Shown: piece by piece, positions 10,426 through 47,741 of the stretch
How positions within the stretch are numbered: position 1 is the first letter of the stretch
Layout: the number at the start of each line of letters is the position of its first letter
Source: Azolla caroliniana
Taxonomy: Eukaryota > Plantae > Polypodiophyta
NCBI GenBank assembly: GCA_043228905.1
Contig: JBHGNT010000009.1
Location: forward strand, 18,476,001-18,540,000
Direction: 5' to 3'
DNA: 64,000 bases
Notes under the pieces: model-generated
The model's input: only the letters and a program-made list of their open reading frames with translations
Databases searched by the model: none
What the model was told of the DNA's origin: nothing
Program-made: the position numbers and the translations under genes

Positions 10426-11377
10426 TTAGGTTTTCTGTTGGTTGTACTTCCATAAAGGATCGAGATTGACGTGCAATACACTTTTGAGGAGGATTTTGTG
10501 CCAAATAAACCATTCCATTTCTTTTACCTAAACATCATCATCCTCGTAAATGATGAATGAATGCATCCAGCCAAAACAATGAATACAAGATCTTATTCAC
10601 ATTTTCTAGATGGTTGAGACGAATGCGTATTATGACTCCAGGATTGTTCATCGTCGTGTTCTTGATGTCGTACACTAAGATCATGATTCTAAACCGATCC
10701 TACTTGGGGTCAAACCTAATGTGATAGATGATTACGTTCAAATACCGTGATAGATGATTACATTCAACTAACCCAATGTTATCCCTTCCCCAATACACAC
10801 ATGTATTGATTGCACAACATTACCGAGTACTTTGTCATCGTTGTATTTCAAACTGTCAATCTCTGATGTGTAGATATCGTTCTCATCTCATCATACCAAC
10901 CGCTAGATTCTTCCACTCATACGTAATTTTGCATTGTTGAATCTCGAATACGCTATCTTCTATTAATTCTACTAGACTAACCAAATGAAAAGTATCACAC
11001 ATGTGATGTCTTAGTGGTGGCCTTCTTGTACATTGTTTCTAAATTTTAAACGATGTCATCCTTGTTAACAACTACATTCAAATACACATCATACAACAAC
11101 TAGGCCTCATCACATTTTTGCTTTTACTAGCATGTATTCATCAAACTAGGTCAGACAGGAGCACGACGAGCCTAAGCAAGAAAGGAATTGCTCAAATGTT
11201 CCCTCAAGTGGATGCACATTAAAAACATGTAAACGGCATCGTCGTGATAGATGATTACGTTCAAATACGTAATGTTATCCCTTCCCCAAGGTACACGCAT
11301 GTATTGATTGCGCAACATTACTGAGTTCTTTGTCATCGTTGTATTTCGACTCTCAAAGAGAGGAACCTAATCTTAGT

Positions 11378-11450
11378 TGATCCTACTAGGGATCGAACTT
11401 AGAAACTCTAGTTTCGTAAACCAGCACCTTATCCATTGGGCCATAGGATC
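11378..11450 (-). tRNA. tRNA-Arg(ACG)-derived pseudogene
   Basis: Same 73-nt cloverleaf. Acceptor stem GATCCTA/TAGGATC is intact; the T-stem has a mismatch. Confidence 0.85.
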
Positions 11451-12388
11451 TTAGGTTTTTTGTTGGTTGTACTTCTGTTGAGGATCGTGATTCACAATAC
11501 ACTTTTGAGGAGGAATTTGTGCCATATAAACCATTCCATTTCTTGTTTGGGCTTGTTTGAATACAATTTGGGGAAGGGCTAATATTACATATTTGAACGT
11601 AGTCATCGATCACGACGACACCATTTACAAATATTTAATGTTCATTCGCTTGAGGGAACATATGAACAACGCCTTTCTTGTTTGGGCTCGTCATGTTCTT
11701 GTTTGGGCTTGTTTGAATACAAGTGAGTAGAGGCAAGAATGTGATCTTAATGTGTATTGATTGCTTTTACTCAAAAAGCGTGATCTTATATCTACAATTT
11801 TGATTGAATGCATTCATTTAGAAGGATGATGTTTAGGGAAATTACTCTATTTTGGCACAACAATAAGAAACTCACTGAATTTTTTATATGGTGAACTTGT
11901 TTTGTTTCAACATTAAAATTCGAGCATGTGTAAACTTTAGGGTGTTGTGAATCATTATTGGTTATACATATATAAACGCCAATTAATGTTTTTGTATCAC
12001 TTTTTAAGACAATGTGTTGTTTGTTTTCTACTCTTTCTCATCTAGCAGTGTTGCTGATTGAGAAAATATGTGTTTTCCTATGTTTATTTGAAGTATCGTA
12101 CACCACAGACATTTTTAATTCATGGTTTTCCATGGGTTATAACTTGACTTTGCCATGACATGTTAATAGAATGTGCATATTCGTAGGTGCATGAGGTTTG
12201 AATATTTATTTGTAAGGTATTGAGTAGGTTTTATGCTATTAGAAGAATGACCTAGATTTGGTCCTCTGATAATTAAGCCGGTAAAAAGTATCACGCTTGC
12301 ATGAAACATATCGATAAAAAAAACAAGTGTTGGTATATAGTTTTAATCGTGTGATGTTGGTTAGGCAAAAGTCTGGGCACCATCCTGC

Positions 12389-14807: not shown

Positions 14808-14833
14808 GACGGCAACGGAGAAGCAGGAGGTAC

Positions 14834-14871
14834 TAGCCCTAGCCCTAACCCTAACCCTAACCCTAACCCTA
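14834..14871 (+). repeat. (CCCTAA)n-type telomere-like tract just upstream of the CFAP53-like ATG
   Basis: GCCCTAGCCCTAACCCTAACCCTAACCCTAACCCTAA. Confidence 0.9.
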
Positions 14872-15109
14872 ATAGAAGAACAGCATTCTGCGACAGATCG
14901 AGAGAGACATTAGTTGTAGATTAGAGAGAGAGAGAAAGAGAGAGGTCAGTTACGGTGATTGAAGAGACGCACGCAGAGATCTCGCTTCAGCCTTCAGTTC
15001 ACACATACATAGATAAAAAATAAGTTGTGAACCTCCTTCTCCATTTCAAAGAAGAAGAAGAAGAAGAAGAAGAATGTGTGTATGTGTGTGTATGGGCCGA
15101 AGTTGTAAG

Positions 15110-15184
15110 TTAGGGTTAGGGTTAGGGTTAGGGTTAAGATTAGGGTTAGGATTAGGGTTTGGGTTTGGGTTTGGGTTTGGGTTT
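15110..15184 (+). repeat. (TTAGGG)n/(TTTGGG)n telomere-like tract with G-quadruplex potential
   Basis: Direct reading. A TGGGCC site-II-like motif lies at ~15093. Confidence 0.9.
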
Positions 15185-15420
15185 TCCGAGCCGTACCCCA
15201 GTCGGACCGGGACCGGACGAAAATACATTGAGAAGTGTTATGTTCCAATGATTCTCTCCCTCCCTCCCTCACATACTTGGATATCACATGCTATCTATCT
15301 ATCGTCCATCATTATTTGACATCTACCAAGTGTCTCCACACAACTCAATCACAATGGTATTGTATATTGTTCCCACAATAGTCATCCGAGGTTCTTGAGA
15401 AAGCTGTGTCTATTGCCAGT

Positions 15421-15986
15421 AATGTTGATAATGCTTGCTCTTGCCATATAAAGTGTCCCTTAATCATGTTTGAAGTGGTCTAAAGTTGTTGATTGATGTG
15501 TAATGTTGATAATGCTTGATCTTGCCATATGAAGTGTCCCTTAATCATGTTTGAAGTGGTCTAAAGTTGTTGATTGATGTGTAATGTTGATAATGCTTGA
15601 TCTTGCCATATGAAGTGTCCCTTAATCATGCTTGAAGTGGTCTAAAGTTGTTGATTGATGTGTAATGTTGATAATGCTTGATCTTGCCATATGAAGTGTC
15701 CCTTAATCATGCTTGAAGTGGTCTAAAGTTGTTGATTGATGTGTAATGTTGATAATGCTTGATCTTGCCATATGAAGTGTCCCTTAATCATGTTTGAAGT
15801 GGTCTAAAGTTGTTGATTGATGTGTAATGTTGATAATGCTTGATCTTGCCATATGAAGTGTCCCTTAATCATGTTTGAAGTGGTCTAAAGTTGTTGATTG
15901 ATGTGTAATGTTGATAATGCTTGATCTTGCCATATGAAGTGTCCCTTAATCATGTTTGAAGTGGTCTAAAGTTGTTGATTGATGTG
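15421..15986. repeat. Minisatellite, 7 x 81 bp, nearly identical copies
   Basis: The unit AATGTTGATAATGCTTGATCTTGCC...GATTGATGTGT starts at 15421, 15502, 15583, 15664, 15745, 15826 and 15907. Confidence 0.95.
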
Positions 15987-16485: not shown

Positions 16486-17265
16486 TAATAGACAACAACT
16501 ATAATTAAACCAAAACTTGTACAACACTCCTAGAAATACGGTAGAACCAAATATAACATAAATCCAATAGTTAATTTTAGAATAACAAATATTGCTCGTT
16601 ATTAATTCAAAAGGTAAAGAGAAAAGCATTTTTAAGGGGATGCTTTACACAAGGATATCTCCCAAAATTATTATATTTTTCAAATTAACTCCCAAACAAA
16701 ACCCTTATTCCAAGCCAAATAAAAGGAAAGTATATATACACACATACATACAAGGGAAGCTTTGGGCCATGTCCATGGAACCAGAGTCTAGACATGCCCG
16801 TGTAATGATTTAGAGCACTACATATATTATAGATCTAGGTACTAAAGTAAGCTTAAGATAAGGATAAAGAAATGAAAGATAGAAAGGAGAAAGACAAAAA
16901 AGGGTGTCGATCCACCCGACCACCCCCGAGCGAAGGGATCGAGACGGACTCGAGCCTCGATCGGCGTCCCATACCACCGCCGTGGCGTCGAGTCGTACCT
17001 GGTGCTGGCGCGCTCGCTACAAGAGTTGACCCACCACACGAGCAGAGTCTCGATGTAGTCAAAAGATGATCAAATGAGGGTAGCTAGGCCTCTTATTTAT
17101 AGCGATACCCAAGGCCCCCATGCAAGTTCACACTTGACCTAATGGGTTGTCTCAATCCCGAGGATTAAAAGTAATCCTCCCCTTCTTTACACTCTCGTTT
17201 AACCCTCACACTTATCCGCGTGTATAGAATACTACGATAAATTCTTACCACAGGATATTATATGG

Positions 17266-20200
17266 TCATGCCCGTAACATACTCCCCCTCTTTAAAACAT
17301 TGCACTCTTGCAATGGAAAGTTAGGGAAGTTAGTTCTAAGAGTTTTTTCGCGTTCCCATGTGGCATCTTTTATTGATTTATCCATCCATTTTATTTTAAA
17401 TTCTCGGATTTCTTTAGTACGTAATTTTTTTGTTTTAACATCGAGAATTCTTTCTGGTACATGTGGTTTAGAAGATATTTCTTCAGAAGTAACCAGAGTT
17501 TCAGTCGTAACTGTATTGTCGCCAGAACCTAGAAGTTCTTTTAGACGACTCACATGAAAGACTGGATGAATTCCGACACCATCAGGAAGAGCGAGACGAT
17601 AGGCTGATGACCCAATGCGTTTGAGGACTGTAAAAGGTCCACAAAACCGTGGGGCTAACTTAGCGCACTTACTCGTAGACAATGTCTTAGAATTGTGAGG
17701 TACACGTAAAAATACCTTCTGTCCAAGGTTGAATACACGAGGTTGCCTATGATGATCGGCATAAAAGCACGCTCTATCTTGAGCTGTTTTTATATTATCT
17801 CGTGCAATATGCAACATATCTTGCATATCCCGAAGAAAGTTTTGCGTACTTCGCAACTCATCATGATGTATATTAACATCAATCGGGGCTCGTGGCTGAA
17901 AACCATACATCAACATAAAAGGACTATATCCCGTCGACGTATGCTTGGAGCTGTTATAAGCAAACTCCAAATTTGGGAGATAACATTCCCATTTTGTTGG
18001 TTTTGCACCAACGTATGCTCGAAGCATGTCCTCAATAATTTGATTTACTCGTTCTGTCTGTCCATCGGATTGAGGATGATCCGTGGAGCTCATGCTCAAC
18101 GTAGTTTCTAACTTCTTAAAGACTTGTGTCCAGAAGTCACTAGTAAACTTTGGATCTCAATCACTCACGATATCCATCGGTAACCCATAAAAACGAAACA
18201 ATTCGTCAACGAATTGGTAAGCCAATTCAAGAGCTGTTACCGTGGTTTTAGTAGCAATAAATCTGGCCATTTTAGTTAGTCGATCAACGACAACCCAGAT
18301 GGCATCATGACCTTTTTGGGTGCGAGGAAGGCTAACAATAAAATCCATGGATATACTTTCCCACTTATTATTGGGAATGTCCAAGGGATGTAAAAGTCCT
18401 GCGGCTTTAAGTCACTCGGCTTTGTTAACCTGACACTGGTGACATTTAGTCACATAGTTATGTATGTCAGGACGCATCTTAGGCCAATAAAATTGAGTGG
18501 AGATGAGAACGAGTGTACGATGTATTCCAGGGTGCCCTGCTGAGGGTGCATCATGGCATTCAAAAAGAATCCTCTTTTTGACCTCGGGTAAATCTGGAAC
18601 ACAAACCTTCCCATTACGGTAGAGCAAACCGTTAGCAATGTGGAAGTATTCCTTCGAGGATGTGGTGGTGTTTGTTCCAGACTCAACTCTTGCCCAGTAT
18701 TTTGCGAAATAACTGTCATCAGGATACTTTCCTCGAAGGTGATCATAAAGATCTGATGATATTTCAATGAAGCTAAGCGTGTTAACTTCACGGATGCGAC
18801 TTAGTGCATCAGCGACAGTGTTCATGGAACCTTTACGATATCGTATGGAAAAATCAAAGTCCTGGATGAGATTAGCCCATCGTGCCTTACGACCTTTAAG
18901 GTCTTGTTGGTCACAAAAATATTTCAAGGACTCGTGGTCCGTAGTTACCACAAAGTGATTTCCATAAAGATAATGGCGCCATGTTTTGAGCGCATGTATA
19001 ACTGCAAATAATTCCTTTTCTTGAACGGTATACCGACTTTGAGCAAAATCAAGTTTCTTACTCTCGAATGTTATTGGTTTACCATCTTGATACAAGACAG
19101 CACCTATCGCATAATCACTTGCATCGGTTTCAACCTCAAAAGGTTTTGAAGGATCAGGTAAAAGAAGTGAAGGAGCCTTGCAAACCAAGTCCTTGAGTTC
19201 CTTAAAGGCAAGGTCTAGTGTAGCATTCCACACAATAGGTTTTGTAGACTTACGCGTTTGACCTTTTAAAAGATCAGTAAACGGCGTCGTCAATTGGGAG
19301 TAATTACAAAGAGACTTTCGCAAAAACCCCACAAAACCAAGGAATGATCGAACTTCTCGAATATTCCGAAGAGTGGGCCAAAGCTTGATTTTCTCAATGC
19401 GAGAAGGATCAATTTCAACTCCTCTTTCGGTTATGAGATGTCCTAGATAAGTAATTGATTTCTTGAAGAACTCACATTTTGAGATCTTCGCATAAAACTG
19501 TTTGTCACGCAATGTTTGTAAAACAAAGCGGACATGTCTAGCATGTTCTTGTAATGTACGGCTATAAACTAAAATATCATCCAAGAAAATAACGACAAAT
19601 TTTCCAAGTTGTTCTCGGAAAATGTCATTCATTTCTTGTTGAAAAGTAGCCGGAGCATTGGTCAAACCAAAAGGCATTTCCCAACAAATTGCGACTGCTT
19701 AGTCCCGGGCGCTTCGTTGGGTTTGTTATGGTCCTTCTTCGAAGTGCGTTGATAGCGAAGAACTATTTCAACGGCCTCTTCGAAGGATTTTGGATCCTTA
19801 TCGTGCACTATCCAGTGATAGTCCGAATTGGGGATGCCATTGACAAAACAAGCTATCAACCAATTGTCCCCTTCTAGACCCGATTTTTGGATTTGGGTTC
19901 TAGCATGGTGAACATAGTCTTCTAGCGAGGAAAATTTCCTGCTAAAGAGGTTCATTAAAGCTTGTGCTGCCTCGGTTCGAGAGGGAGGTTGCAGAAATTG
20001 GCCCTTAAAAACCGTGACAAAATCTGTCCAGGTATCGGGCAATTTCCCCATAGTACGGAGGCCACGCCACCAAGCGGCGGCCTTACCCCCGAGTTCTCGG
20101 CCGACATATGCAATCTTCGTACTATCTGGCGTGGGATAGAGCTCAAAATGAGACTCCCATCGTCCCAGCCATGTGCAGATTGCTTCTTCGGTTCTTTCCT

Positions 20201-20459
20201 TTTCGTCTCCGGTAAATGGCTTAACGACAAATGATGGTTCACCTTGTCGCTCATCAGGTCTATTAGTCTCACGTTGTAGACTAATGACACGTGCCTCAAG
20301 AGCACTCTGAGATTGCCGAAGTTCGGTCATCTGTTGAGCGGTGAAACTAAGGTATTGGGTTATTTGTGCCAAATACATCTCAGTAGACATTTGTCCAGGA
20401 GGATTCCCTTGAGTTCCTTCCGCTTGAGCGGATGACATCGGGTCGTTAATTTGAGCCAT
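17266..20459 (-). pseudogene. Chromovirus gag-pol remnant (protease and RT N-terminus deleted; in-frame stops near 18412 and 18157)
   Basis: Motifs MPFGLTNAPATF, FLDDIL, ETDASD, HPQSDGQTER, and chromodomain-like IKW...ATWE. Confidence 0.93.
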
Positions 20460-21557
20460 TAAAGATTATTTCTGGAAAAGAAATAGGATAAGGTCAGAGA
20501 TATAGTCATAACATCATGTCGTGATGTAAACATATCATGGGCGAGCATTAATCGATATCATTATCTCACGTCAATACCCCTCTAGACGTATGAGATGAGG
20601 TTCAAGATCAGGTTACTATGGTAACACAAAGGTGTTTTAAAAACTATGGGGGTGACAAATAAATGTCTTTCCCTGATCTCTATATCGATTTTTTTATGGT
20701 GGCTCCCCGAGGCTCAACCATGTATGTTCGCGTCATGAATTGTTTATACACGAAAAAAATGTTAATAATAAACTATGTTTCGGTGCCCACATATGTGGTT
20801 TCGGCTCTTTAAGTCCTATTACGAGGACCCCGAGGTGCACTTAGACTTTAAGTCTAAACATGTGTTATAGTCATATGTATCAAGGATGTTGTATGGTCTT
20901 GGTCATATTTGAACTCGAGACCTCGAGAACAAATACATTAAACACTTGAGCCAACCAAGTAAGTTGCTCTTCTCGAATGCTTAATGTTTGATGCGTATAA
21001 GAGATATGCGAGATCATATATGTTTTTTTTCAAAGAACATATATGTCAAGGGTCCTTATTTCGCCCTCATTTACCAAAACTATGTTGGTACGTTACCTAT
21101 CCTCAAGTCTCGTAATTACGATGGCATACGCCAAAGTGCAACCTAATGGTGAAGCCAAATGAGCCCTTGTTTCGTAGTAGGCTCACGTGGGCCATCACAT
21201 GGTCACGTCATTACGAATGCCTCTCGTAAGAACGAGCTCATGGTGGCATCGTATCCATGTAACGAGGGAGGGATGTTGGATACGTGCGTCATTGGAGCGA
21301 CCTCACTTGAAGTGGGTCAAGCCCTACGTACTCAACATCATTATGGCTATTGGCGTTTCTTTACGTAACGAAATCGAGGTCATCAACGGGGTTATCAACA
21401 ATAAAAAATTGTTGAAAAAGGGATGGTGACAACGCCATTCTCACAAAAATGTGAGGACGGCCACCAACATCCTTTTCCCGACCATGACAACTTTCGACAT
21501 AAACTCGTAATAGCGAATATACACATATGTTTACTTTTCACATATATACGATCAAAT

Positions 21558-24500
21558 TGTCAAGATTCGAACTCTTGACACGACCATGTTATAATCTACT
21601 ATTATGAGTTAACCAAGATATCTAGTACTAGTTATATATGTAATTGGTCCTTATTATTTTGCTAGCATCATGTGCATAGTTGCTCCCTTGTAGTATTTAC
21701 ACTTGTTGATCTGCGTGGCGCGTACAATCTAGTACGCATCAAGCCGGGGGATGAATGGAAAACCGCATTTCGAACACAATATGGGCATTTCGAATACAAG
21801 GTAATGCCTTTTGGTCTTACTAACGCTCCCGCAGTTTTTCAACATATGATGAACGATATTTTCCGGGAATATCTTGATCTTTTTGTTGTCATTTACCTCG
21901 ATGATATTCTCATTTTCTCGCCAAACATGGAGGAGCACACTCGCCAAGTCCGATTAGTTCTGGCCAAACTTCGCGAGCATGGCCTTTATGCCAAAGGCGA
22001 GAAATGCGAGTTCGACCGTACCTCGATCGAATTTCTGGGCTACATCATCTCGCCCACTGGCATCACCATGGATATGAAGAAGGTCTCTGTCATTCAGGTG
22101 TGGGCGACTCCAAGGCGACTTAAAGATGTGCAATCCTTCCTCGGCTTCGCGAATTTTTACCGTCGCTTCATCAAGGGGTTTTCCACCCTAGCACAACCTC
22201 TTATCGCTCTCACCCATAAAGGCACTCCATTTTTATGGACCTTGGAGGCACAAAATGCGTTCGACTCACTCAAACATGCATTCATCACTGCCCCGGTGCT
22301 GCTACATGCCGACCCCACAAAACCCTTCCAAGTCGAAACCGATGCCTCTGACTTTGCCATTGGCGCCATCTTATCCCAAGTAGACGACAACAACCTAATG
22401 CACCCAGTGGCTTACTATTCCCGAAAATTTATGGCATCCGAAATCAATTATCCCATTTATGACAAGGAGCTTGCTGCTATCATTGCTGCCTTTGAAGAAT
22501 GGCAACCCTACTTGGCCGGCGCACAACATCGTGTCCAGGTAGTGACTGATCATAAAAATTTAGTTTATTTTTCCACCACTTGTACTTTGAATCGAAGGCA
22601 GGCCCGTTGGTCTACATTTCTCGCCGACTACGATTTTGAGATCGTATTTCGACCTGGTGGCCAACATGGGAAGGCTGATGCCCTTTCTCGCCGAGCTGAC
22701 CTTGCACTCCGCCCTGGGGATGCTGCTTATGCTCAACAATCTAGACGTTTGTTGAAACCCGACCAATTGCATCTGTTTGCCACTTGTATGTTGCAGGATG
22801 ATTCTTTACTCCAACAAATCACTGATGCATCCAAGACCGATGCGTTCGCCAACGAGATTCGAGATAGTGTGCAAAACCCCTCCAAGGCGACCAAAAGGAA
22901 GGATCTTGACACCTTCACCATACAAGAGGGTTTGTTGTTCCGAGATCATCTCTTATACGTCCCAGAGGGCCCATGTCGCACCCGGGTGTTGCGGGAATGC
23001 CACGATGACCCACTTGCAGGTCATTTCGGGGTCGCGAAAACCCTCGAGCTAATCTCTCGGGGGTATTAGTGGCCACAACCATGGAAGCTGGTCAAAGAAT
23101 ACATAAAGAGTTGTGAGGTTTGTGCTCGCTCCAAAGCCATTCATCATCGGCCATATGGCTTACTACAACCGCTTCCATGTCCTCGTCGTCCTTGGGCCTC
23201 TATCTCTATGGACCTGATAACTGATCTACCCTTGGTCAATAACTATGACTCGGTGTTGGTCGTTGTCGATCGGTTTACGAAGATGGCTCACTTCACTCCA
23301 TGCTCCAAAACCATTTCCGGAGAAGGAATGGTGCATCTCCTACTCAACAATGTAGTACGCTTGCATGGACTCCCCGATGATGTCATCTCGGATCGCGGAC
23401 CCCAGTTTGTCTCTCACTTCTGGCAGCGCCTGCTACAAACTTTAGGCATCTCTGTCAAGTTGTCCTCCGCTTATCACCCCCAAACTGACGGGCAAACGGA
23501 GCGTGTCAACCAAATCCTTGAGCAGTATCTTCGGTGCTCGGTTAGTTACCAACAAGATGATTGGGTCAACTTACTTTCGCTCGCAGAATTCGCCTACAAT
23601 AATTCTCTCCATGCATCGACTGGCGTCACTCCCTTCTTTGCCAACTACGGTTTACATCCTCGCTTCAACATTTCCCTTCCTACCACTTCCGTGAACCCTT
23701 CGGCGGAGGATCGTGCCCGCATTTTGGAAGAAGTACATCATGATTTATCCTTGGAGCTTAGTCTTGCTAATGAACGATACAAGAAGCAGGCTGATCGCCA
23801 TCGATCTTCCACTCCACACTTTGTCGTTGGAGACATGGTCTGGTTGTTACGTCGACACATCTCTACTACTCGTCCATGTGCGAAACTTGATTACAAGAAG
23901 TTGGGACCATTCCGTATCATCGAGTGCATCAATCCCGTCGCCTTCCAGCTCGCCCTTCCATCCCACTTCCGGATTCACGATGTTTTTCATGTCTCCCTCC
24001 TCGAACCCCATTATGCTTCACAACTCCCAGGACGTCAAGCCCCACCACCACCACCTGTGCAATTGACGACAGGGGAGGAATACGAGGTCGACCAAATCCT
24101 TGACTCGCATTGGCACCGTCGACACTTGCAATACCTCGTCCTATGGAGGGGTTACCCCATGTCTGAGGCCACATGGGAACCATCGGCAAATTTACAAAAT
24201 GCCCCAGAGGTCGTCCAAGATTTTCATCATCGATATCCCCACAAACCAGTGGCCGATTTGGGAAGGCGGCGGCGTAAGAAGGGGGATAATGTCAAGATTC
24301 GAACTCTTGACACGACCATGTTATAATCTACTATTATGAGTTAACCAAGATATCTAGTACTAGTTATGTATGTAATTGGTCCTTATTATTTTGCTAGCAT
24401 CATGTGCATAGTTGCTCCCTTGTAGTATTTACACTTGGCACATGCATGCATACCTACATGCTCTATTGTAGATTCACATGCGTGCAACAAGTATGCATGC

Positions 24501-24642
24501 CATGTAGTATAAATAGAGGAGTTCACCTTGAAGGAATTCAAGGTGAACAACACCAGTTATGGAGTCTTTCCTTTAGTACTATCTTCTTTGTTGTCCATTT
24601 GGTTATCTTCTTCGTTGTCTCTTGAGTTTATGATCCATGACA
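21558..24642 (+). mobile_element. Nested Ty3/Gypsy chromovirus, TSD CAAAT; 5' LTR truncated (21558-21705), 3' LTR 24290-24642
   Basis: TG...CA ends with CAAAT at 21553-21557 and 24643-24647. PPT AAGAAGGGGGATAA. RT (YLDD), RNase H, integrase and chromodomain (EYEVDQIL...YLVLWRGY...ATWEP). One in-frame TAG at 23067-23069. Confidence 0.97.
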
Positions 24643-25987
24643 CAAATACGTATATATGTGACCACATATGCCTATATTAAACATATCGTTATATTAAATA
24701 GCCACAAATGATGTGATCGAGATACGTAATCGAGGTATATACCTCTCCGCACACGAAACATCCACAAATAAGAGATCATCGTAATACGCAATTAAGGTAT
24801 TGACCTCTTACGCATACGAGACCAACCGCATATCGTTTACAACAAATCAAGGTATTAAACTCATACGCAAACGTAACATATGTTCGTGAAAGTAATACGT
24901 AATTGAGGTATTAACCTCGTACGCATACGACACTCATCACATATTATTAATATGTCAAACGAGGTATTGACCTCGTGCACATATGTAAACGTTTTAGATA
25001 ATCAATTAAAGACCACTACAACATCATTGACTTAATGAAAAAAATTACATATAAACTAAACACATGATTAGATGGGAGAAGAGAGAATAGAAAGAAAAAT
25101 TATGGAAAGAGTTACCGAAGTTCTTTGTTGATCGTTGTCTGGATCAAGGCCAACTGCACAACGATCGATCAGCATCAATCAAAAGACAAATGAAAAACAA
25201 AGAAACATTAGTACAAAGCTCTGATACCAAATATTATAGATCTAGGTACTAAAGTAAGCTTAAGATAAGGATAAAGAAATGAAAGATAGAAAGGAGAAAG
25301 AGAAAAAAGGGTGCCGATCCACCCGACCACCCCCGAGCGAAGGGATCGAGACGGACTCGAGCCTCAATCGGCGTCCCATACCACCGCCGTGGCGTCGAGT
25401 CGTACCTGGTGCTGGCGCGCTCGCTACAAGAGTTGACCCACCACACGAGCAGAGTCTCGATGTAGTCAAAAGATGATCAAATGAGGGTAGCTAGGCCTCT
25501 TATTTATAGCGATACCCAAGGCCCCCAGGCAAGTTCACACTTGACCTAATGGGTTGTCTCAATCCCGAGGATTAAAAGTAATCCTCCCCTTCTTTACACT
25601 CTCGTTTAACCCTCACACTTATCCACGTGTATAGAATACTACGATAAATTCTTACCACGGGATATTATATGGTCATGCCCGTAACAACATAGGTAGTGCT
25701 CACCCGACAAAAGTAGATAGATAATGTTTATTTGGGGTGTGTGTGTGTGTGTGTGGTCAATGAGTTGGAGAGATTTAACTTCCACGTCAGACCGACCGGA
25801 ATCTATGGGCATATCACATGTTGAGGATCAAACTTGGGTTCTCTCAAATTATACTAGAGCCTCGACGAGGGGGGCATTTGTCTTGACCTCTATTACTGTC
25901 ATCCACCTTACTACCGTTGATTGTAGCTTTATATTAACACTTGTTTGCCCGTGGAACTGACTAGATGCTTTGAGAATAAACATCTAG

Positions 25988-28771: not shown

Positions 28772-29247
28772 GAAGGAGAAGCCCTAGAGGAGGTTTTGCT
28801 TTAATTCATTGTAGCAGGAGAAGGAAGGCGCAATGGAGTGAGTCTCAAAGTTTTCAGTTCAGAGAAGGGGATGGTGTTGGGTGTCTCAGAAACCCTAATT
28901 AATTATAATTAGGTTTATTAAATTAATTAGGACGCGCCTGCCAGAAGCAAATGCCCAACCTTCTCTTCTGCTCTGCCAAATGAGAAAAGAAAGGACAACA
29001 CACAGAAAGAAAGGTTTCCATTTCCATCAATAAATTATGGGCAGCCATCCCATCGCATTTCATTTGTCCCACATACAAAGGCATACACGTAGAATGGGGG
29101 CAGGCATGAAGAAGAAGGAGAAGCCCACAATCATATATGTATATGTATATGTAAGTAATGGACACACAAACTTTGGGCCTAAATGTCACGATACATGTGG
29201 AAATGGGCAGCTATATGTCCCACATACAAATGGCATCTATCCTATAT

Positions 29248-29288
29248 GTCCCACATACAATGGCATATGGCCACGAACCCTATAAATA
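29248..29288 (+). promoter_or_regulatory. USE-like GTCCCACATAC, 22-bp spacer, TATAAATA (copy 1)
   Basis: The same spacing occurs at 38082/38115, 40872/40905 and 46987/47020. Resembles the plant snRNA USE RTCCCACATCG. Confidence 0.55.
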
Positions 29289-29309
29289 GGGACTAGGGGG
29301 CCACTTGTG

Positions 29310-29549
29310 CTACACATACAAAAATCATGGCTAAGAACAAAGTGCTCTTAGCTATGAAAAAGGCCATGGCTTGCATTGAGCAAGATGTGGCTTATTGCCT
29401 CTTACTCCTCTCCGTCCTCTCCGCCTTCAGAAAAGTGGAGCAAGAAAGAAGGGAAGAAAGGAGTAAGAATAAGGCCAAAATATGGCCTCTCCCATAAATC
29501 GGGAGTGGCCATAACTGGTATAACGCCCATCAGGTGTCCAGGGGACACC
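29310..29549 (+). ncRNA. Candidate structured RNA (six consecutive hairpins) or 56-aa sORF 29327-29497, copy 1
   Basis: Stems ATGGCTAAGA/TCTTAGCTAT, AGGCCA..CTTGC/GCAAG..TGGCTT, TCTTACTCCT/AGGAGTAAGA, TATGGCC.CTCCC/GGGAG.GGCCATA, CTGGT/ATCAG and GGTGTCC/GGACACC, downstream of a TATA box. Confidence 0.45.
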
Positions 29550-30014
29550 ACCCCCCCCCCAAAACCCAAAACCCAAGGAGGAGTAAAAATATGGCCCCTA
29601 CCATAAATCGAGAGTGTCCATAATTGGTATAACGCCCATCGGACACCCCCCCCCCCCCAAACCCTAATCCATTGTCCTTGTCATGCATTCCCAATATATC
29701 GGGTTGTTTCAACCAAGCCTAACCCACCATGTCATCTATGTTGAATTGCTCCTCAAATCCAAACATACTTACATGAAATTTATTTCACTATGACCCTATT
29801 CATTATAATTTGACCTAAAAACATGAAGATAAACACTACTATTATTAGAACGATCGTAACGAGGCGACAATCCTCCCCGATGAATATACCTTCCAATTCC
29901 ACAATCTCTTTGATTCCCCTCATTCAAATTCTTGGCACAATCCTTCGTCTCACAAAGAAGGGTGGAACAAGGCCCCCAAAAACTGCCCCCCAACCACGAC
30001 AAACAAAAGTTATT

Positions 30015-31789: not shown

Positions 31790-32742
31790 TATAAGTATCA
31801 CACAATACATATACGTAGAAGAAGAAGGACAAGCTCACAATGATATATATATGTAATGGACAGACAATCTTTGGGCCCACACACAATACATGTAGAAATG
31901 GGCAGACATAACTGGTATAATGCCCATCAGGTGTCCAGGGGACACCACCCATCTTCTTCTGTACCCCGTCCAGTATGTACATATTTGTCCTCCCATCTTC
32001 CTGTTTCTTTGACCTCTGATGATTTAGTTTTTGGTGGTAGTACATATTTGTCTGGCTTCATGACTGTTTCTTCTGATGCGTGATTCCTTTGAGTTTATAT
32101 ATACTACAAAACTCCCAAAGCTTCTTTTCCATTCCAGATTTGTCCACTTCTTATCGTTTTTTGAAAGATTAAGAAATGGACAAATCTGGAACGGGTTACC
32201 TTCTCTTACAATGGGATGTTGTCAAGTTTTTAAGCTCAATTGTTTCTGATTGTCATGCGTAGTAGGCATTACTTTGAATCCCTGCATAATATTTGCTTAT
32301 TATGCCCATTGATTTCTTGGTCGAGTTTGGGTTAAATTAGTTTCTTTCTCCTGTTGTTTGTTTTGCCATCTCTGAGATGCAGTTTAGCGAACACTAATGA
32401 AAGTATTACCCTAAAGGCTCTTTACCCCCTCCAATATGCAAGGTGCACCAATTTTAATTTGTCCCTGCTATTATTTGGCAGTTAGAATTAGTTAAAATGA
32501 ATAAAATAACACTCACACAAACCCACAGCCAAATCAGCAATAAAAGTATACACTCCCACTCCTGTGACTAGTCATCATAGTTACCCAACCAGCCCGCAAC
32601 AACATCTTTACCGCCTCTATGCTCTCAGATACTGAGCTTATTTTGGCTATGAAAAGGAATCGAAATCCCACTAAATTCTTGCATATCTAGCAAAAAGTTG
32701 CCAAAACATTGAGCCAAAATCCACCAAATTCTTTGCAAATCC

Positions 32743-37845: not shown

Positions 37846-38081
37846 ACACAAAAAAGGTTTCCATTTCCATCAAACTATGGGCAGCCATCCCATCCCATTT
37901 CATGTTATTTGTCCCACATACAAAGGCATATCTATGAAACCCCTAACACACAATATATACATACATGTAGAACTTAGAAGAACAAGGACAAGCCCACAAT
38001 GATATATGTATGTAATGGACACACAAACTTTGGCCCACACACAATAAATGGGCACACATATGCCCATTGCCCATCCCATAT

Positions 38082-38384
38082 GTCCCACATACAATGGCAT
38101 ATGGCCAAGAACCCTATAAATGAACCAAGGGGCACTTGTGCTACACATACAAAAATCATGGCTAAGAGTAAAGTGCTCTTAGCAATGAAAAAAGCCATGG
38201 CTTGCATTGAGCAAGATGTGGCTTGTTGCCTCTTGATCCTCTACTTTCTCTCTGCCTCCAGAAAACTGGAGCAAGAAAGTGAGGAAGAAAGCGAGGAGTA
38301 AGAATAAGGCCAAAATATGGCCTCTCCCGTAGATTGGGAGTGGTCATAACTGGTATAACGTCCATCAGGTGTCCAAGGGACACC
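38082..38384 (+). ncRNA. USE-like/TATA plus hairpin unit, copy 2 (sORF 38158-38301, 47 aa)
   Basis: Same architecture as copy 1, with stem-preserving differences. Confidence 0.45.
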
Positions 38385-39667
38385 ACCCTACCCCCCCAAA
38401 AAAACTCTAAACCCCCTTATTAACATACTCACCCAAATCTTGTATCCATCCAAAACACCCCTAATACATATGTGGAAATCACATGATTCCTTAAATCAAT
38501 CCATGGTCCATTAAGGGGGAAATTCTTATATATCTTTTTCACTTCGACCAACATATTTTTCGCTCACTTAATTTTTGATTAATCGATCCCATTGATTGTG
38601 GTTAGTCAAATTGTCCAATTCATTTACATTATACAAAACACACTAATAACCAATAAAATTCTAGGAGATGTGTTTTGTTGGTGGGACTATTAACAATTAC
38701 ACACACAATTACACAAATAGCTGCCCGCTGATAATTATATTAGAGAGGTAATTCGCATACAACTACCCCGCATATGAATTGTGAGCTTTAAATGATAAGA
38801 GGAGAAAAAGAGTAGGAAAAAAGATGAGTATCCATTACGTATCCCATAGGAGAAATCAGAAGCAAAAGCTGCTGGGTTTGGATGGAATACACAACCTAAA
38901 TTGATGGCTATCAAGTTTAACCCGAGACATCAATGGTGACAGTGACTGTGAGCAGACCATTCTTTTTCAGGAGGAACAGCATTGTTTGATGAGATATTCA
39001 CCAATTCGAAGGAAATTTTAGAGGCCAATGGAGCATTTCTTCTATCTAATCATCCAAGTTTAGTTGTCTTTGAAAATTCGAGAAAACAATTCTCAATCCA
39101 TGTCAGACACGAGACGGGATTAAATTAAATTTCATGATCTACATATAAATTCCATGACACACTACACAAGATTTACACAAAAGCCTGGCATTTTCATATT
39201 CAAAATGCATAATTTTGCTCCTGTTACATAATCCATTATCCATTACAGCCTGGTCCTCTTTAGATGTATATTGAGTTCACATTAGACCAAGTAAAAGGTC
39301 TTCATGACCAATAATGGCCTTTCTCTTGAAGAATTAACGTAATTTAGATCCCAAAACATGCAACACTCCTGTTTTGTTATGCATAAACACATTTTCACAT
39401 TGGAGACAACATTGATGTGGACAAGCTCCCATGCCGGGACATGGTCACAGCCACACACACACACACACACACACAGAATATAAGTAAACTTTGAAAGAAG
39501 TAATATAATAAGGGAAATGTGAAAAATAGAACTTGTTACAACACGGATGGAAGGTTTATAAAGTGTCTTTTAGAAATTAATAAGGTGTCTATGTATTTAA
39601 AGGGCATGAACATTAGAATATATTGAAACAATTAAGAGCTTGTCTCTTGGGTTTCTCACACTTTTGC

Positions 39668-39867: not shown

Positions 39868-40871
39868 CTAAGCATAAAAGAAAACATAATACAACTTCAG
39901 AATATAAAGCACAGATCATAATGGTTACAAAATGCATGGATAAGACTTTATACACCATTTAGACAGTTAGTTGAGTTTCAGTGGTATATACCATTTCCGT
40001 GGTTCTGATGGAAAATCAGGAGAATACACTCTCATATCTGAATTATGATGGCTTTTCCCAGCTCTTCAAGCACTCGCATAGAGTTTCTTCGAAAGAATTA
40101 GGGTTTGACATTGGAGAAGAATATGGTACAAAAGAAAAAGACGCAGATGATGATGATGATGATGATGATGGTAGTGGTGGCGACGAGGAAGAAAACACAG
40201 CCGCCATGCCATGGAGGAGGTAAGTTTTGTTTGTTTCTGGTGACTACTTTCAAGACGCAAATAATAGGAGAGAATAGAATAGAGATTTCTGAGGGAGAAA
40301 CTGTAAAATGGTTTTCGGTGAAGAAGAAGAAGAAGAAGAAGAGAGGAGTGATATATAAGAGTTATTCTGAGAGAGAAACCAAAGTTTTGCTTGATAGTTT
40401 TGCTTTAATTCATTGTAGCAGGAGAAGGAAGGCGCAATGGAGTGAGTCTCAAAGTTTTCAGTTCAGAGAAGGGGATGGCGTTGGGTGTCTCAGAAACCCT
40501 AACTAATTATAATTAGGTTTATTAAATTAATTAGGACGCGCCTGCCAGAAGCAAATGCCCAACCTTCTCTTCTGCTCTGTTTGTGTTCTGTCTGTCTCTC
40601 TCTGCCCAAATGAGAAAAGAAAGGAAAACACACAGAAAGAAAGGTTTCCATTTCCATCAATAAATTATGGGCAGCCATTTCATTTCATTTCATTTGTCCC
40701 ACATACACGTAGAATGGGGGCAGGCACGAAGAAGAAGGAGAAGCCCACAATAATATGTATATGTAATGGACACACAAACTTTTGGCCTAAATGTCACAAT
40801 ACATGTAGAAATGGGCAGACATATGCCCATCCCATTTAATGTCCCACATACAAATGGCATCTATCCCATAT

Positions 40872-41173
40872 GTCCCACATACAATGGCATATGGCCACGA
40901 ACCCTATAAATAGGGACTAGGGGTCCACTTGTGCTACACATACAAAAATCATGGCTAAGAACAAAGTGCTCTTAGCTATGAAAAAGGCCATGGCTTGCAT
41001 TGAGCAAGATGTGGCTTATTGCCTCTTACTCCTCTCCGTCCTCTCCGCCTTCAGAAAAGTGGAGCAAGAAAGAAGGGAAGAAAGGAGTAAGAATAAGGCC
41101 AAAATATGGCCTCTCCCATAAATCGGGAGTGGCCATAACTGGTATAACGCCCATCAGGTGTCCAGGGGACACC
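40872..41173 (+). ncRNA. USE-like/TATA plus hairpin unit, copy 3 (sORF 40951-41121, same 56 aa as copy 1)
   Basis: Nearly identical to copy 1. Confidence 0.45.
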
Positions 41174-42544
41174 ACCCCCCCCAAAACCCAAAACCCAAGG
41201 AGGAGTAAAAATATGGCCCTTGCCATAAATCGAGAATGTTCATTGGACCCCCCCCACACTCAAATCAATCCATTGTCCTTGTCATGCATTCCCTATATAT
41301 CGGGTTGTTTCAACCAAGCCTAACCCACCATGTCATTTATGTTGAATTGCTCCACAAATCCAAACATACTTACATGAAATTTATTTCACTATGACCCAAT
41401 TCATCATAATTTGACCTAAAAACATGAAGATAAACACTACGATTATTAGAACGGTTGTAACGAGGCGACAATCCTCCCCGATGAATATACCTTCCAATTC
41501 CACAATCTCTTTGATTCCCCTCATTCAAATTCTTGGCACAATCCTTCGTCTCACAAAGAAGGGTGGAACAAGGGCCCCAAAAACTTCCCCCAACCACGAC
41601 AAACAAAAGTTATTGGGCTTGGATGGAATACAACAAATTCTGGCTCAAGTGGTGTAAACTCGGGGACATTGATTGTGAGCACACCATTCTCCATGGTTGT
41701 GACCCACACACTCACTTAATAATATGTGATTAAAATTAGTCACGGGGACTCCACTATATATAAGAAGGTTGTATCACGTGCCTTTATGACATAATTTATA
41801 AACTCCTTATACGTATGTTTTTTCTTCTATTCTAGTGACCCTTTTGTTGGAAAAAGATTAATAAAAATACCCCTTATTAATAATATATTTTTTGATAACC
41901 ACCCATTTTAAATACCCTTACATATAAAATATACGTGCACACATAGTTTCCAATCCTAAAACGGATCAATGACCATCTTTACAATTGATGACTCACAAAA
42001 TTATGAATGAACATTAAACATCATATGCAAATTCCTAACAATTTTGCATTGATGAATCTTGAATACGCTATCTTCTATAAATTCTGCTCTAACCAAATGA
42101 AAAATATCACGCTTCGTGTAGATCGTTTCTAAATTTTAAATGACGTCATCCTTTTTGACAACTACATTGAAATACACATCATACAACGACTAGGCATCAT
42201 CACATTCTGGCCTCTACTCGCTTATATTCAAATAGGCTAGATAGGTGCACGACGAGCGTAAGAAAGAAAGGCATTGTTCATATGTTCCCTCGAGCGAATG
42301 CGCATTAGCGGGATCGTCGTGATCGATGATTACTTCAAATACATGATGTTATCCCTTCCCTAATCCACGCATGTATTTATTGCGCAACATTACCAAGTAC
42401 TCTTGATCGATGATTACTTCAAATACATGATGTTATCCCTTCCCTAATCCACGCATGTATTGATTGCGCAACATTACCAAGTACTCACCAAGTACTCTGT
42501 CATCGTTGTACTCTGATTCTCAAGAAGAGGAACCTAATCTTAAT

Positions 42545-42617
42545 CAATCCTACTAGGGATCGAACCTAGAATCTCTTGTTTCGTAAACCAACGCCTTGTC
42601 CATTGGGCCATAGGATC
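42545..42617 (-). tRNA. tRNA-Arg(ACG)-derived, probable pseudogene
   Basis: GATCCTATGGCCCAATGGACAAGGCGTTGGTTTACGAAACAAGAGATTCTAGGTTCGATCCCTAGTAGGATTG. Confidence 0.85.
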
Positions 42618-42886
42618 TTAGGTTTTCTGTTGGTTTTACTTCCATAAAGGATCAAGATTAACATGCAATACACCTTTGAGGAGGATTTTGTGCCAAATAA
42701 ACCATTCCATTTCTTTTCCCTAAACATCATCATCCTCACAAATGATGAATGAATGCATCCAGCCAAAACAATGGATACAAGAGTTGATTCACATTTTCTA
42801 GATGGTTGAGACGAATGCGCATTATGACTCCATGATTCTTAATCGTCGTGTTCTTGACGTCGTACACTAAGATCACGATTCTAAAC

Positions 42887-42959
42887 CGATCCTACTAGGG
42901 GTCGAACCTAGAATCTTTGGTTTCAAAGACCAACACCTCATCCACTAGACCATAGAATG
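42887..42959 (-). tRNA. tRNA-Arg(ACG)-family body with anticodon TTG, pseudogene-like
   Basis: CATTCTATGGTCTAGTGGATGAGGTGTTGGTCTTTGAAACCAAAGATTCTAGGTTCGACCCCTAGTAGGATCG. A 3' remnant of the same variant lies at 10695-10718. Confidence 0.75.
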
Positions 42960-45155
42960 TTCGACCTATGATTAAATAGAAGATACCGCATATGAATGTA
43001 TACGATCTCATATTTCTCATCATATTTCTTAAGCATCGTATTTTTCATAGTATCTATTGTCTCTTATCTTACCACTATATTCCTAGCCACATTACATAGA
43101 TGAGCTTAAATGGGTTTATCGGATAAAGGTATGCGGTGTGACGTATGTAATCCATAGAAAAGCATTCATGACCATACAAATGACCTTAAAGAAGAGTTTT
43201 TGTCTCAAACTATCAATCTCTAATGTCTAGATACCGTTCTCATTTAGTCATGCCACCTGCTAGATTCTTCCACTAGTAATTAATTCTACATGACTAACCA
43301 AATGAAAAGTATTGGTAGCCTTCGTGCACACATAGTTTCCAATCCAAGAAGGGATCAATGACCATCTTTACAATTGATGACTCGCAAAATTATAAATGAA
43401 CATTAAACATCATATGCAAATTCCTAGAAATCCTTCATCAAGTGCCACATAGATTAAAAACATAATGTGTAGGATGCCTATGTTGAATTCGGGTTCTATG
43501 AGGCTCACACGGAGGGTATGTGCTCGGGTAATGCTATGCTCTTCGGATGATGTGGTGTTTTGGAGTTGTTTTTCTTGTTTCCTTTACACATATTGTTTTC
43601 CTTTTGACACTCAAGTTGGCCTGTAAGATATGAGTTGTATATTATCCTATGTACATTGCCTTAACTAATGGAAGTAGGTTTTTTTTGGAAAAAAGAAAAA
43701 CAATGTGTAAAGTATAAAGTAATGCACGCACAATTAGGAACATTACCCAAAAACACCAGACGTATAACATATATAAGCCACATATAAGTTTTATATTTAG
43801 TTTATTGAGACATATGGAGAATATAGAGTGATAAAAAACAATGTAATTTACAAAAAAACAATCTTGAACTTGATATATATATCTCTAAGAGCACACAAGG
43901 AACAATCTAAAATGCATATCAATAATGAAATTACTAACAATTTAACATTATGTTTGGTTTCATGGATAAACTTATATGAAGCCATAACATTATTTTTTCT
44001 CAAACACATTGATCAAACAAATGGCAACCTATTTTATATTTCCATTTGAAATGTAAGACATCATCTATTTATATATTTTTACCCAAATCAAAATCAAAAT
44101 GAAATAAAATAAATTATTTTGTTATTGCATTGTCTACTTAAAAAACTTATTACAATAAAGGTTACTCTCATAAAGACCAACTATATAAAAAGAAAACCCT
44201 AAAAAGTTCATTTTAGGATATAAATTTCATGTCGTTTCCATCTTCAATGTTGGACCTGTATTATAACATGTAACACCGAAGGAAATAAATCTTAATATAC
44301 ATGGAAGTAAAAAATATCTTAAATGAATCAGAAAAATATATTTGAAATATCGTAGGTTTATATTTGGTTTCTACTCTTTTCTCCTTTTCTTGTTAAAATA
44401 AAAAGCATAAACATTAAGTTACTTTAATATATATTATATATTATATATGTACATACATGTATGCAAGTATATAATTCCAAACAACTTATATATACATCCC
44501 TGGATTTCATTTCTAAAAGAAAATCGTTGAAAACTTTACAATCACTTTCGTTTAACATATACTTATCACATTTTGCATTATATGTGAGGCATTGGAATCA
44601 TGTGATTTGTACAGAGGGACATGGAAATATCTCCATGCCTCCATCATTACAGAAACCCTTAATTGCAATTTGGCATTGGAATCATGTGATTTATACAGAC
44701 TCCATGCCTCCATCATTACATTACACAACGCGTAACATAAATTGATTGAAATCATCCACGGTAAATAGAAATGGACAAAACATATTCCAATGACAGCATG
44801 ACATGAATCAGTTGGTAGCTTCCAGAGTAAAAACATATAAAGAGACAAATCAGAGGTGAATTAGGAATATATTGTTCAAAATTGGATTCAAACAAGGCCT
44901 AATTACACAGCCTTCATATTGAGGCTTCTCTCCCTTTGTATACATAATTAACACAAAAAAATGGATCAAAAAATACCATTGGTTTTCATCGTTATTTAGG
45001 GCAATACCATCAGTTTTGCGTGTTATTTAATTTAATGCTAGTTTTACTAGCAAACACTTAGGCTTAAACATGAATCAAATAATGATCCATCGGGAGCATA
45101 TCGTCTGGTTCCAGTAATTTATTATACAACGTTATTGTTATTATTATTCAATTTT

Positions 45156-46101: not shown

Positions 46102-46986
46102 CTAAGCATAAAAGAAAACATAATACAACTTCAGAATATAAAGCACGGATCGGAATGGTAACAAAATGAGTGAATATATAACTGCATAATATAAAGCACA
46201 GATCATAATGGTTACAAAATGCATGGATAAGACTTTATACACCATTTAGACAGTTAGTTGAGTTTCAGTGGTATATACCATTTCCGTGGTTCTGATGGAA
46301 AATCAGGAGAATACACTCTCATATCTGAATTATGATGGCTTTTCCCAGCTCTTCAAGCACTTGCAAAGAGCTTCTTCGAAAGAATCAGGGTTTGACATTG
46401 GCGAAGAAGCAGATGATGATGATGATGATGATGATGATGGTAGTGGTGGTGACTAGGAAGAAAACACAGCCGCCATGCCATGGAGGAGGTCGAGAAGCCA
46501 CATCCTGCACAGTCAAGAAGCAAAAATAGGAGAGAATAGAATAGAGATTTCTGAGGGAGAAACCCTAAAATGGTGTAAAATTAATTATATAGGAACCCTA
46601 ATTAATTAGGTTTATTAAAAACTGTAAATTATATATGTATAGGACGCGCCTGCCAGAAGCAAATGCCCAACCTTCTCTTCTGCTCTTCTGCTCTGCTCTG
46701 TTTGTGTTCTGTATACATACAGACAAACTTTGGGCCCACACCATGAGAAGAAGAAGAATATGGGCAGGCATCCCATCCCATTTCATTTCATTTGTCCCAC
46801 ATACAAAGGCCACAAATTATACAATACAGACAAGTAGAAGAAGAAGAAACGAATGATTTATGTATATATGTAATGGACACACAAATTTTGGGCTCAGATG
46901 TCACAATATGTACATGTAAAAATAAATGGGCAGACATATGGCCATCCCATTTTATGTCCCACATACAAATGGCATTCATCCCATAT

Positions 46987-47284
46987 GTCCCACATACAAT
47001 GGCATATGGCCACGAACCCTATAAATAGGGACTAGGGGCCCACTTGTGCTGCTCACATACCAAAATCATGGCTAAGAATAAAGTGTTCTTAGCAATGAAA
47101 AAAGCCATGGCTTGCATTGAGCAAGATGTGGCTTGTTGCCTCTTGCTCCTCTACTCCCTCTCCGCCTCTAGAAAACTAGAGGAAGAAAGAAAGGAGAGAG
47201 AAAGGAGGAGTAAGAATAAGGCCGCTCCCATAAACGGGAGTGGCCATATATGATATAACGCCCATCAGGTGTCCAGGGGACACC
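46987..47284 (+). ncRNA. USE-like/TATA plus hairpin unit, copy 4 (sORF 47068-47253, 61 aa)
   Basis: Same architecture; inner stem CCTCTAG-AAAA-CTAGAGG. Confidence 0.45.
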
Positions 47285-47741
47285 ACCCCCCCTTAATACA
47301 CCCATCCAAATCCTCAATCCATCCAAAAACCCCTCTAATACGTGCATGGAAATCACATGATTCCTCAAATCAATCCATGCTCCTTGTCATGCATTCCCAA
47401 TGTCTCTAGATATAACTGTTTCTTGTCTTTGTCCACGTCTCTCATGACTTTAGCACATGGAAAGCCCAAACTAATTCATCTTCCGCACGGATTCACGAAC
47501 CGCATGTTCCACATCCTTTGCAATTTGTGAGAACCTCATTGATCTTGCAAATTGTGAGGACCTCGTTGATCTTCCCGTGTTTACGATAGCTTTGCACAAA
47601 AATGATGCGATCTTCAATGGTTTCAATGGTTGTTTCAACCAAGCCTAACCCACCATGTCATCTATGTTTAATAGCTCTTCAGTTCCAAACATACTTACAT
47701 GAATATTATTTCATAATGATCCCATTCATCATAATTTGACC

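Follow-up and report, generated by a model that had tools for sequence, protein, structure and literature searches.

Which kind of element is a short, hairpin-rich unit that recurs on one strand of a fern contig, each time behind what looks like a promoter: a gene for a structured RNA, a gene for a small protein, or a palindromic piece of repetitive DNA? The question is raised by positions 29002 to 29560 of a 64,000-nucleotide stretch of Azolla caroliniana DNA (GenBank assembly GCA_043228905.1, contig JBHGNT010000009.1, positions 18,476,001 to 18,540,000 of the forward strand), referred to below as the window, in whose coordinates positions are given. An earlier description made from the letters alone, the sequence-only reading, had proposed a new non-coding RNA (ncRNA) behind a promoter of the small nuclear RNA (snRNA) type, with an upstream sequence element (USE) and a TATA box, and had assigned it to RNA polymerase III (Pol III), to a family like the short interspersed nuclear elements (SINEs), or to the element that moves the surrounding mosaic of repeats. 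We find the unit to be real, conserved and gene-like, and to belong to a tandem family that is lineage-specific (orphan). Its sequence features suggest, as the reading that we prefer but hold only as quite possible, a tandemly arrayed gene, probably transcribed by RNA polymerase II (Pol II), for a structured RNA that is perhaps also coding.

Promoter-like motifs and the tandem array

Units were delimited by self-comparison and alignment of the window, and the copy that raises the question, c1, comprises the following features.

29002..29560, + strand: copy c1, whole unit, with upstream repeats, boxes, TATA, structured block containing an open reading frame (ORF), and C-run
29066..29076, + strand: distal GTCCCACATAC box
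29217..29227, + strand: middle box, within a 31-bp duplication of the proximal box
29248..29258, + strand: proximal USE-like box, 22 nt 5' of TATA
29281..29287, + strand: TATAAAT
29327..29497, + strand: ORF of 56 codons plus stop, opening at the first ATG past TATA in the context AAAATC-ATG-GCT
29551..29560, + strand: C-run, at which homology between copies repeatedly stops
29561..29660, + strand: partial tandem duplicate, now decayed, of the 3' portion (a second segment like hairpins H4 and H5, with a C-run), found only in c1, c3 and the related locus L013

Exact matches to the box GTCCCACATAC number 11 in the window, lie on the + strand throughout and are confined to four full units. When one mismatch is allowed, 13 matches are observed against 0.7 expected, the one-mismatch matches at 58601 and 62173 falling within retroelement ORFs and looking like chance; ATTATGGCTAAG at 31258 was also set aside as a chance occurrence and not a copy of the unit. 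In all four full copies the proximal box (at 29248, 38082, 40872 and 46987) is separated by a spacer of exactly 22 nt from TATAAAT (at 29281, 38115, 40905 and 47020), just as the sequence-only reading had described, and the exact-match scan bears out its one or two additional GTCCCACATAC boxes upstream of each proximal one. The middle box belongs to a local duplication of the proximal box, and the sequence flanking the USE-like box in the unit is AAAGGCAT.

The earlier count of four copies has to be raised to five, since an internally deleted one (c5) was also recovered, and all of them lie on one strand.

31795..31950, + strand: copy c5, with an internal deletion by which the proximal box, TATA and ORF are lost, the upstream part and hairpin H5 being kept
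37846..38401, + strand: copy c2, boxes at 37911 and 38082, TATA at 38115, ORF at 38158-38301 (47 codons, with a C-terminal frameshift)
40640..41180, + strand: copy c3, boxes at 40696, 40841 and 40872, TATA at 40905, ORF at 40951-41121, identical to c1 from the ATG to H5
46773..47292, + strand: copy c4, boxes at 46794, 46956 and 46987, TATA at 47020, ORF at 47068-47253 (61 codons), in which an 11-nt deletion shifts the frame of the last codons

Because c1 and c3 are nearly identical, the window holds just three independent full versions of the unit. Two of the four successive gaps between copies measure about 2.8 kb; the remaining two, of about 6 kb each, contain in one case a truncated Copia element (32.9-37.2 kb) and in the other a block of tRNA genes. 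The arrangement is a same-strand tandem array with a period of about 2.8 kb where it is not interrupted by later insertions, and the modules surrounding the units recur in mosaic order across the window and in L013.

Thirteen related loci were also recovered, eight of them (L001-L008) through contigs bearing proteins of the matching clusters and five (L009-L013) through a DNA-pattern scan of metagenome contigs. With the window copies, they fall into five subfamilies.

Subfamily W: c1/c3/L013, c2 and c4
Subfamily A: L001-L003, L009 and L010
Subfamily B: L004-L008 and L012
Subfamily D: L011
Subfamily E: a truncated convergent copy on L007

With the c1/c3 modules, L013 shares 95-100% identity as well as the mosaic of modules around them, and the “metagenome” contigs thus appear to derive from the same plant or a very close one. 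The European Nucleotide Archive (ENA) assemblies concerned (ERZ10343xx-10344xx and ERZ272272xx, for L001-L013) contain DNA of the host plant at low coverage, with 95-100% identity to the window, which is why a small fern ORF appears in metagenomic protein catalogues and, letter for letter, in the ESM Atlas. A pattern scan of IMG/VR for a viral origin gave no match. On L007 (positions 1-795), two members stand tail to tail, a B copy on the + strand facing the truncated copy on the - strand, with arms at 287-360 and 601-674 that are 91% complementary; in the truncated copy, ATA in place of ATG turns a G-U pair of hairpin H1 into A-U.

The box of subfamily W, GTCCCACATAC, and that of subfamily A, GTCCCACATAG, both agree at 9 of 11 positions with RTCCCACATCG, a consensus that is the plant USE and may not be the fern's own (the main text of the literature searched gives no fern USE sequence). 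The agreement covers the first nine bases; where the consensus ends in CG, the fern boxes end in AC or AG. W, A, L006 and D have all retained the box, and the 22-nt spacer recurs in the subfamily A contigs examined (L001-L003, L009 and L010) and in the subfamily B contig L006, while that of L011 measures 12 nt. In W, A and L006, box, spacer and TATA are together free of indels amid adjoining sequence that is rich in them; in most copies of subfamily B, box and TATA are both mutated.

In angiosperms, a distance of 23-24 nt between USE and TATA leads to transcription by Pol III and one of 32-34 nt to transcription by Pol II (PMC8287931). Over the 600 nt that follow the predicted start, c1, c3 and c4 contain no T-run of four or more, in keeping with what had been noted before, and the first in c2 lies at +393. 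Canonical Pol III termination is thus absent from the unit, and because no T-run terminator follows it, Pol II would be the more likely polymerase, with transcription predicted to start about 30 nt past TATA (around 29309-29312 in c1). Pol II snRNA genes carry a 3' box, CA(N)3-10AGTNNAA, shortly after the RNA. A match to this consensus lies about 27 nt past H5 in c1, c3 and L013, within the partial duplicate, and none is found in A, c2 or c4.

Fold and conservation of the downstream block

For the approximately 240 nt past the predicted start, the folding energy is -96 to -106 kcal/mol, compared with -62 to -65 kcal/mol in dinucleotide shuffles, so that the block tiled by stems in the earlier description stands; z is -6.9, -6.6 and -9.2 for the window copies and ranges from -6.6 to -9.6 across subfamilies W and A. 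In a sliding scan of 120 nt the signal is limited to 29240-29600, with z near 0 in the flanks, and the structured block therefore coincides with the stretch that the TATA would transcribe. Five consecutive hairpins make up the block, followed by the C-run; in c1 they lie as follows.

29325..29357, + strand: H1, 12-13 bp, containing the ATG
29361..29393, + strand: H2, 7+5 bp, the inner 5 bp invariant across all lineages
29397..29474, + strand: H3, long and imperfect, 25-31 bp, rich in pyrimidines on its 5' arm and in purines on its 3' arm
29481..29513, + strand: H4, with the stop codon of the ORF in its loop
29533..29549, + strand: H5, terminal, 7 bp with a 3-nt loop, within the best-conserved 44 nt of the unit

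The terminal hairpin GGTGTCC-NNN-GGACACC and the C-run are present in every window copy, as originally reported. H3 contains large asymmetric bulges, and in subfamily A an indel remodels the stem of H4 to a longer, perfect one of 9+4 bp with a loop of four or five bases.

Conservation forms islands over the unit. In c1, c3 and L013, 223 nt comprising the ORF and H4-H5 are identical and the flanks differ by 2-5%; between L010 and L009, 180 of 180 ORF bases are identical and the flanks differ by 10-29%. Two separate subfamilies have their tracts of identity centred on the unit, which within subfamilies is either constrained or else homogenised. No excess of conservation in the unit over the flanks is seen in the older pairs (c4-D, c2-c4 and c2-D), a result that fits a decay of the copies c2, c4 and D.

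The fold itself has been retained in part of the family. When c1 was randomly mutated with the observed numbers of transitions and transversions, the mutants folded at -69 to -79 kcal/mol (standard deviation about 8), whereas the natural sequences reach -98 kcal/mol for c2, -105 kcal/mol for c4 and -113 kcal/mol for A (p<=0.01 each); D (-74 kcal/mol) and B (-54 kcal/mol) resemble neutral decay. The fold is kept in c2 and c4 despite their frameshifted ORF ends, and between W and A the 3' hairpins outside the ORF are about 94% identical, against 83% for the ORF.

From this layout we infer a small lineage-specific gene that would be independently transcribed and maintained in the same-strand array. 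Its promoter would consist of the repeated GTCCCACATAC boxes, the proximal one at its fixed 22 nt from TATA; transcription would begin about 30 nt past TATA and end near the conserved terminal hairpin and C-run, yielding a product of about 240 nt with five hairpins in series, of which evolution would have retained chiefly the fold and the 3' hairpins. Because these are what was mainly kept, the product is read as a structured RNA, the ORF being either incidental or a second, weakly constrained function. Stated more narrowly, and with corresponding reserve, the unit might specify a new five-hairpin RNA of about 240 nt, made by Pol II from an snRNA-type promoter in a tandem family and ending in the terminal stem-loop plus ACCC. 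Such an RNA would either constitute a new class among the abundant small RNAs of nucleus or cytoplasm, or be bifunctional and encode, in addition, a peptide of about 56 residues. This version we regard as somewhat doubtful.

Structured RNA, small protein or palindromic DNA

The unit belongs to no described RNA family that could be recognised. At gathering score, Rfam returned four tRNA matches only from the whole window and nothing from eight related loci, and a permissive scan of 29000-29700 gave at best 21.6 bits against a threshold of 70; snRNAs, U3, 7SL, MRP, telomerase RNA, miRNAs and ribozymes are thus without a match, in agreement with the earlier statement that the sequence was not recognised as U6, U3, 7SL, MRP or telomerase RNA. 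For telomerase RNA, moreover, no permutation of a telomere template lies near the 5' end, telomere-like 8-12-mers occurring only past the C-run and differing between copies. No similarity to tRNA, 5S or 7SL RNA was found in the unit. The proposal of a new ncRNA therefore holds insofar as the unit is discrete, conserved, gene-like and without an Rfam family; its non-coding status is not established, given an ORF of 47-61 codons.

Several observations weigh against a structured RNA as the product. H3 is partly compositional, z being only -1 to -5 once its arms are shuffled separately. The minus-strand consensus folds equally well (-73.8 vs -72.6 kcal/mol with RNAalifold), as do single sequences by their z, and the fold is therefore just as compatible with a palindrome at the DNA level or with an antisense RNA; a strand asymmetry sought in G-U pairs was discarded, the count being circular and the minus strand doing equally well in RNAalifold. 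The sequence-only reading had pointed to two paired differences between copies that keep pairing. These differences are real, and they carry little weight as covariation: of the 70 consensus pairs just 2 show compensatory changes, RNAalifold gives a covariation term of +0.44, and both of these pairs are transitions in identical sequence context in the two arms, which parallel methyl-cytosine decay or palindrome template switching could yield. The identity within subfamilies is explicable by gene conversion in place of selection, and the fold-retention test presupposes that c1 is close to the ancestor. Finally, sense frame 0 is the sole frame of six that is open in all seven lineages, and subfamily B has the ORF and has lost the fold (z -1.2 to -1.7).

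The last two points lead to the explanation by a small protein-coding gene, which we consider possible but rather unlikely. An ordinary Pol II TATA promoter would here drive a short mRNA for a protein of 47-61 residues, predicted to have a charged amphipathic N-terminus, a 14-residue hydrophobic core and a tail rich in Lys, Glu and Arg, and the hairpins would be secondary, in part a by-product of Leu/Phe/Ser and then Lys/Glu/Arg codons (much of H3 is indeed compositional) and in part regulatory. The ORF, of 56, 47, 56 and 61 codons in c1 to c4, spans H1 to H4 and opens at the first ATG past TATA (29327, 38158, 40951 and 47068), with A at -3 and GCT after the ATG, although ATA replaces this ATG in D and E. 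Its persistence in every lineage, and in subfamily B beyond that of the fold, has to be set against a neutral expectation of retention of 0.36-0.59 per lineage, the finding of an ORF of at least 47 codons in 7-12% of dinucleotide shuffles, and the way in which the A and B contigs were recovered, namely through called ORFs, a source of bias in the sample. W1, A and D run in frame to one common stop with the shared ending WPLP despite indels of 3, 6, 6 and 3 nt, and in B a -1/-2 indel pair compensates; of nine indels, however, only five are divisible by three, and c2 and c4 carry C-terminal frameshifts. Substitutions favour the third codon position (29 vs 18 and 19, p ~0.04), and count-based pN/pS, which ignores transition bias, amounts to 0.45 for the frame of the ORF and to 0.8-0.9 for the two others of the sense strand; yet the antisense frame sharing third positions scores as low or lower (0.31-0.40), and a maximum-likelihood codon model that accommodates the strong transition bias (kappa 3.0) puts omega at 0.76, not different from 1 (likelihood-ratio test, p=0.26). 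That the non-coding 3' hairpins are more conserved than the ORF also speaks against a protein, as do the searches: nothing above threshold in Pfam (a sub-threshold match to the BhlA holin only), no homologues in a word-indexed protein search and, in an exhaustive search of 1.84 billion representatives, two small clusters, both of the same family as the ORF. An exact-protein contig look-up with the ORF of c3 returned no record. The ORF was also considered as exon 1 of a longer gene, and this was rejected: the candidate GT donor past the ORF is destroyed in D and B, and no longer protein with such an N-terminus is present among the 1.84 billion representatives. On balance, the fold is statistically better supported than the ORF, which cannot for all that be dismissed.

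That the unit is not a gene at all but a module rich in palindromes, belonging to a composite tandem repeat or to some mobile element not recognised as such, seems to us improbable. Its hairpins would then be DNA inverted repeats made or repaired by template switching, its promoter-like motifs and ORF incidental, and the identity of its copies the result of gene conversion or recent amplification. The equal folding of both strands, the shared context of the compensatory transitions, the frequent break of homology at the C-run and the lack of excess conservation in the three older pairs would all follow, and the mosaic order of neighbouring modules (in the window and L013) and the transposon-rich surroundings (the Copia fragment at 32.9-37.2 kb and a chromovirus at 16.8-25.7 kb) are congenial to it. 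The structured block is, however, bounded by TATA and the C-run and not spread through the repeat, the box, 22-nt spacer and TATA remain indel-free in W, A and L006 amid indel-rich neighbours, and the unit forms the centre of the identity tracts in two subfamilies independently. Neither terminal inverted or direct repeats, nor a primer-binding site, polypurine-tract logic or a transposon protein tied to the unit were found, nor any tRNA-complementary site downstream of it, and the suggestion that the unit belongs to the element moving the mosaic module is accordingly not supported. The sole motif resembling a primer-binding site, TGGTATAACGCC before H5, was rejected since the TGG of its TGGTAT is not conserved in A and c4; the pairing of c1 or c5 with c2 as long terminal repeats (LTRs) of the Copia element was rejected too, for want of termini, primer-binding site or matching repeats, the Copia element itself being 5'-truncated. 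Far less probable still are the original attribution to a U6-like, type-3 Pol III ncRNA or a SINE-like family and a related variant, in which a USE-driven precursor would yield small RNAs excised from H3, as in Cuscuta. The box does match RTCCCACATCG, a plant consensus that may not be the fern's, at 9 of 11 positions, the 22-nt spacing is near the 23-24 nt of angiosperm Pol III genes (PMC8287931), and miRNA loci of Cuscuta show that a USE is able to drive hairpin RNAs, H3 having 25-31 imperfect pairs. Against this, T-runs terminate both the Cuscuta loci and the Pol III genes of plants, and c1, c3 and c4 have no run of at least four T in 600 nt; a unit with two or three boxes is unlike an snRNA gene; and the asymmetric bulges of H3 are large. 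An external promoter carried along in same-strand tandem copies is not a product expected of retroposition, and with no tail or target-site duplication seen and a C-run at the end, a SINE is not supported.

Comparison with known systems and the neighbourhood of the array

If read as a gene for a structured RNA, the unit finds its closest counterparts among the plant genes with USE and TATA, including the orphan Arabidopsis AtR8/telomerase RNA (PMC6765143, PMC8287931). These likewise have a box starting with RTCCCACAT at a fixed short distance from TATA, a short and highly structured product of about 250 nt (that of the fern unit being predicted), and multiple copies in which the transcribed region is conserved and the spacers have diverged. 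The fern unit differs from them by its box ending in AC or AG instead of CG, by its two or three boxes, by the absence of a T-run, of a conserved 3' box, of a 5' telomere template and of an Rfam family, and by an ORF that covers 70% of the product. The interface-induced MIRNA loci of Cuscuta campestris, where a U6-like promoter with a USE drives hairpin RNAs (bioRxiv 10.1101/2022.07.06.498962), are a further precedent and resemble it as a large lineage-specific family with a USE-type promoter and hairpin RNAs other than the classical snRNAs; on the other hand, their miRNA hairpin is single, their USE is canonical and lies about 55 bp from the start, and they have poly-T terminators, compared with five hairpins and no T-run here.

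Lineage-specific small-ORF (micropeptide) genes of plants share with the unit a TATA promoter, a short leader, an ATG in good context, about 50 codons, a lack of homologues outside the lineage and weak constraint. They lack its extreme fold (z -7 to -9.6), its 3' non-coding hairpins more conserved than the ORF, its tandem array and its apparent concerted evolution. Replication-dependent histone mRNAs of animals and green algae end in a short stem-loop, those of land plants being polyadenylated. The likeness is one of form only: the fern unit also ends in a short perfect stem-loop, followed by ACCC, but its stem of 7 bp, its 3-nt loop and its sequence are different and there is no histone ORF.

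If transcribed as we propose, the unit would be a new orphan among the few plant RNAs with USE and TATA (snRNAs, U3, 7SL, MRP, telomerase RNA and the Cuscuta miRNAs). If not transcribed, it would be an ordinary palindrome-rich repeat module, and would illustrate that an extreme fold z and promoter-like motifs can arise in tandem repeats. It is also a test case for what stands behind a conserved hairpin block: RNA structure, a micropeptide or the maintenance of palindromes at the DNA level.

The surroundings of the array are themselves composite. Just past the C-run (10-30 nt), telomere-like or telo-box-like motifs of varying form (AAACCCTAA, CTAAACCC, CCCTAAAC and AAACCCTAACCC) occur in several subfamilies, namely at 29650-29670 and 38405-38415 in the window and past the C-run on L001, L010 and L011. 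Telomere-type six-base arrays lie at 14833-14872 (CCCTAA) and 15109-15183 (TTAGGG), in opposite orientation and about 240 bp apart, and a similar array is found 150-400 bp upstream of the subfamily A units on L002, L009 and L010. Close by, at 15419-15986, an 81-bp tandem repeat is present in seven copies of 99% identity, at the place where comparison with L009 and L010 would lead one to expect a subfamily A unit.

The tRNA-gene block that sits in the array between c3 and c4 (42112-43285) is homologous to another at 9593-11544, with 82-89% identity; they contain genes for tRNA-Arg(ACG) at 10353, 11378 and 42545 and for tRNA-Gln(TTG) at 42887, every one of them on the minus strand. Positions 16821-25686 are occupied by a Gypsy element of the chromovirus type, nearly intact, with 459-bp LTRs that are 98.5% identical (16821-17279 and 25228-25686) and ORFs matching RVT_1, RNase H, integrase, chromodomain and Ty3 capsid; these form two opposed blocks, and the interior seems to be rearranged or nested. 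L009 and L010 hold the paralogous empty site, in which 16553-16824 is joined straight to 25689-25979. Additional retroelement ORFs, with zinc knuckle and RVT_1 matches, extend over 58400-62532.

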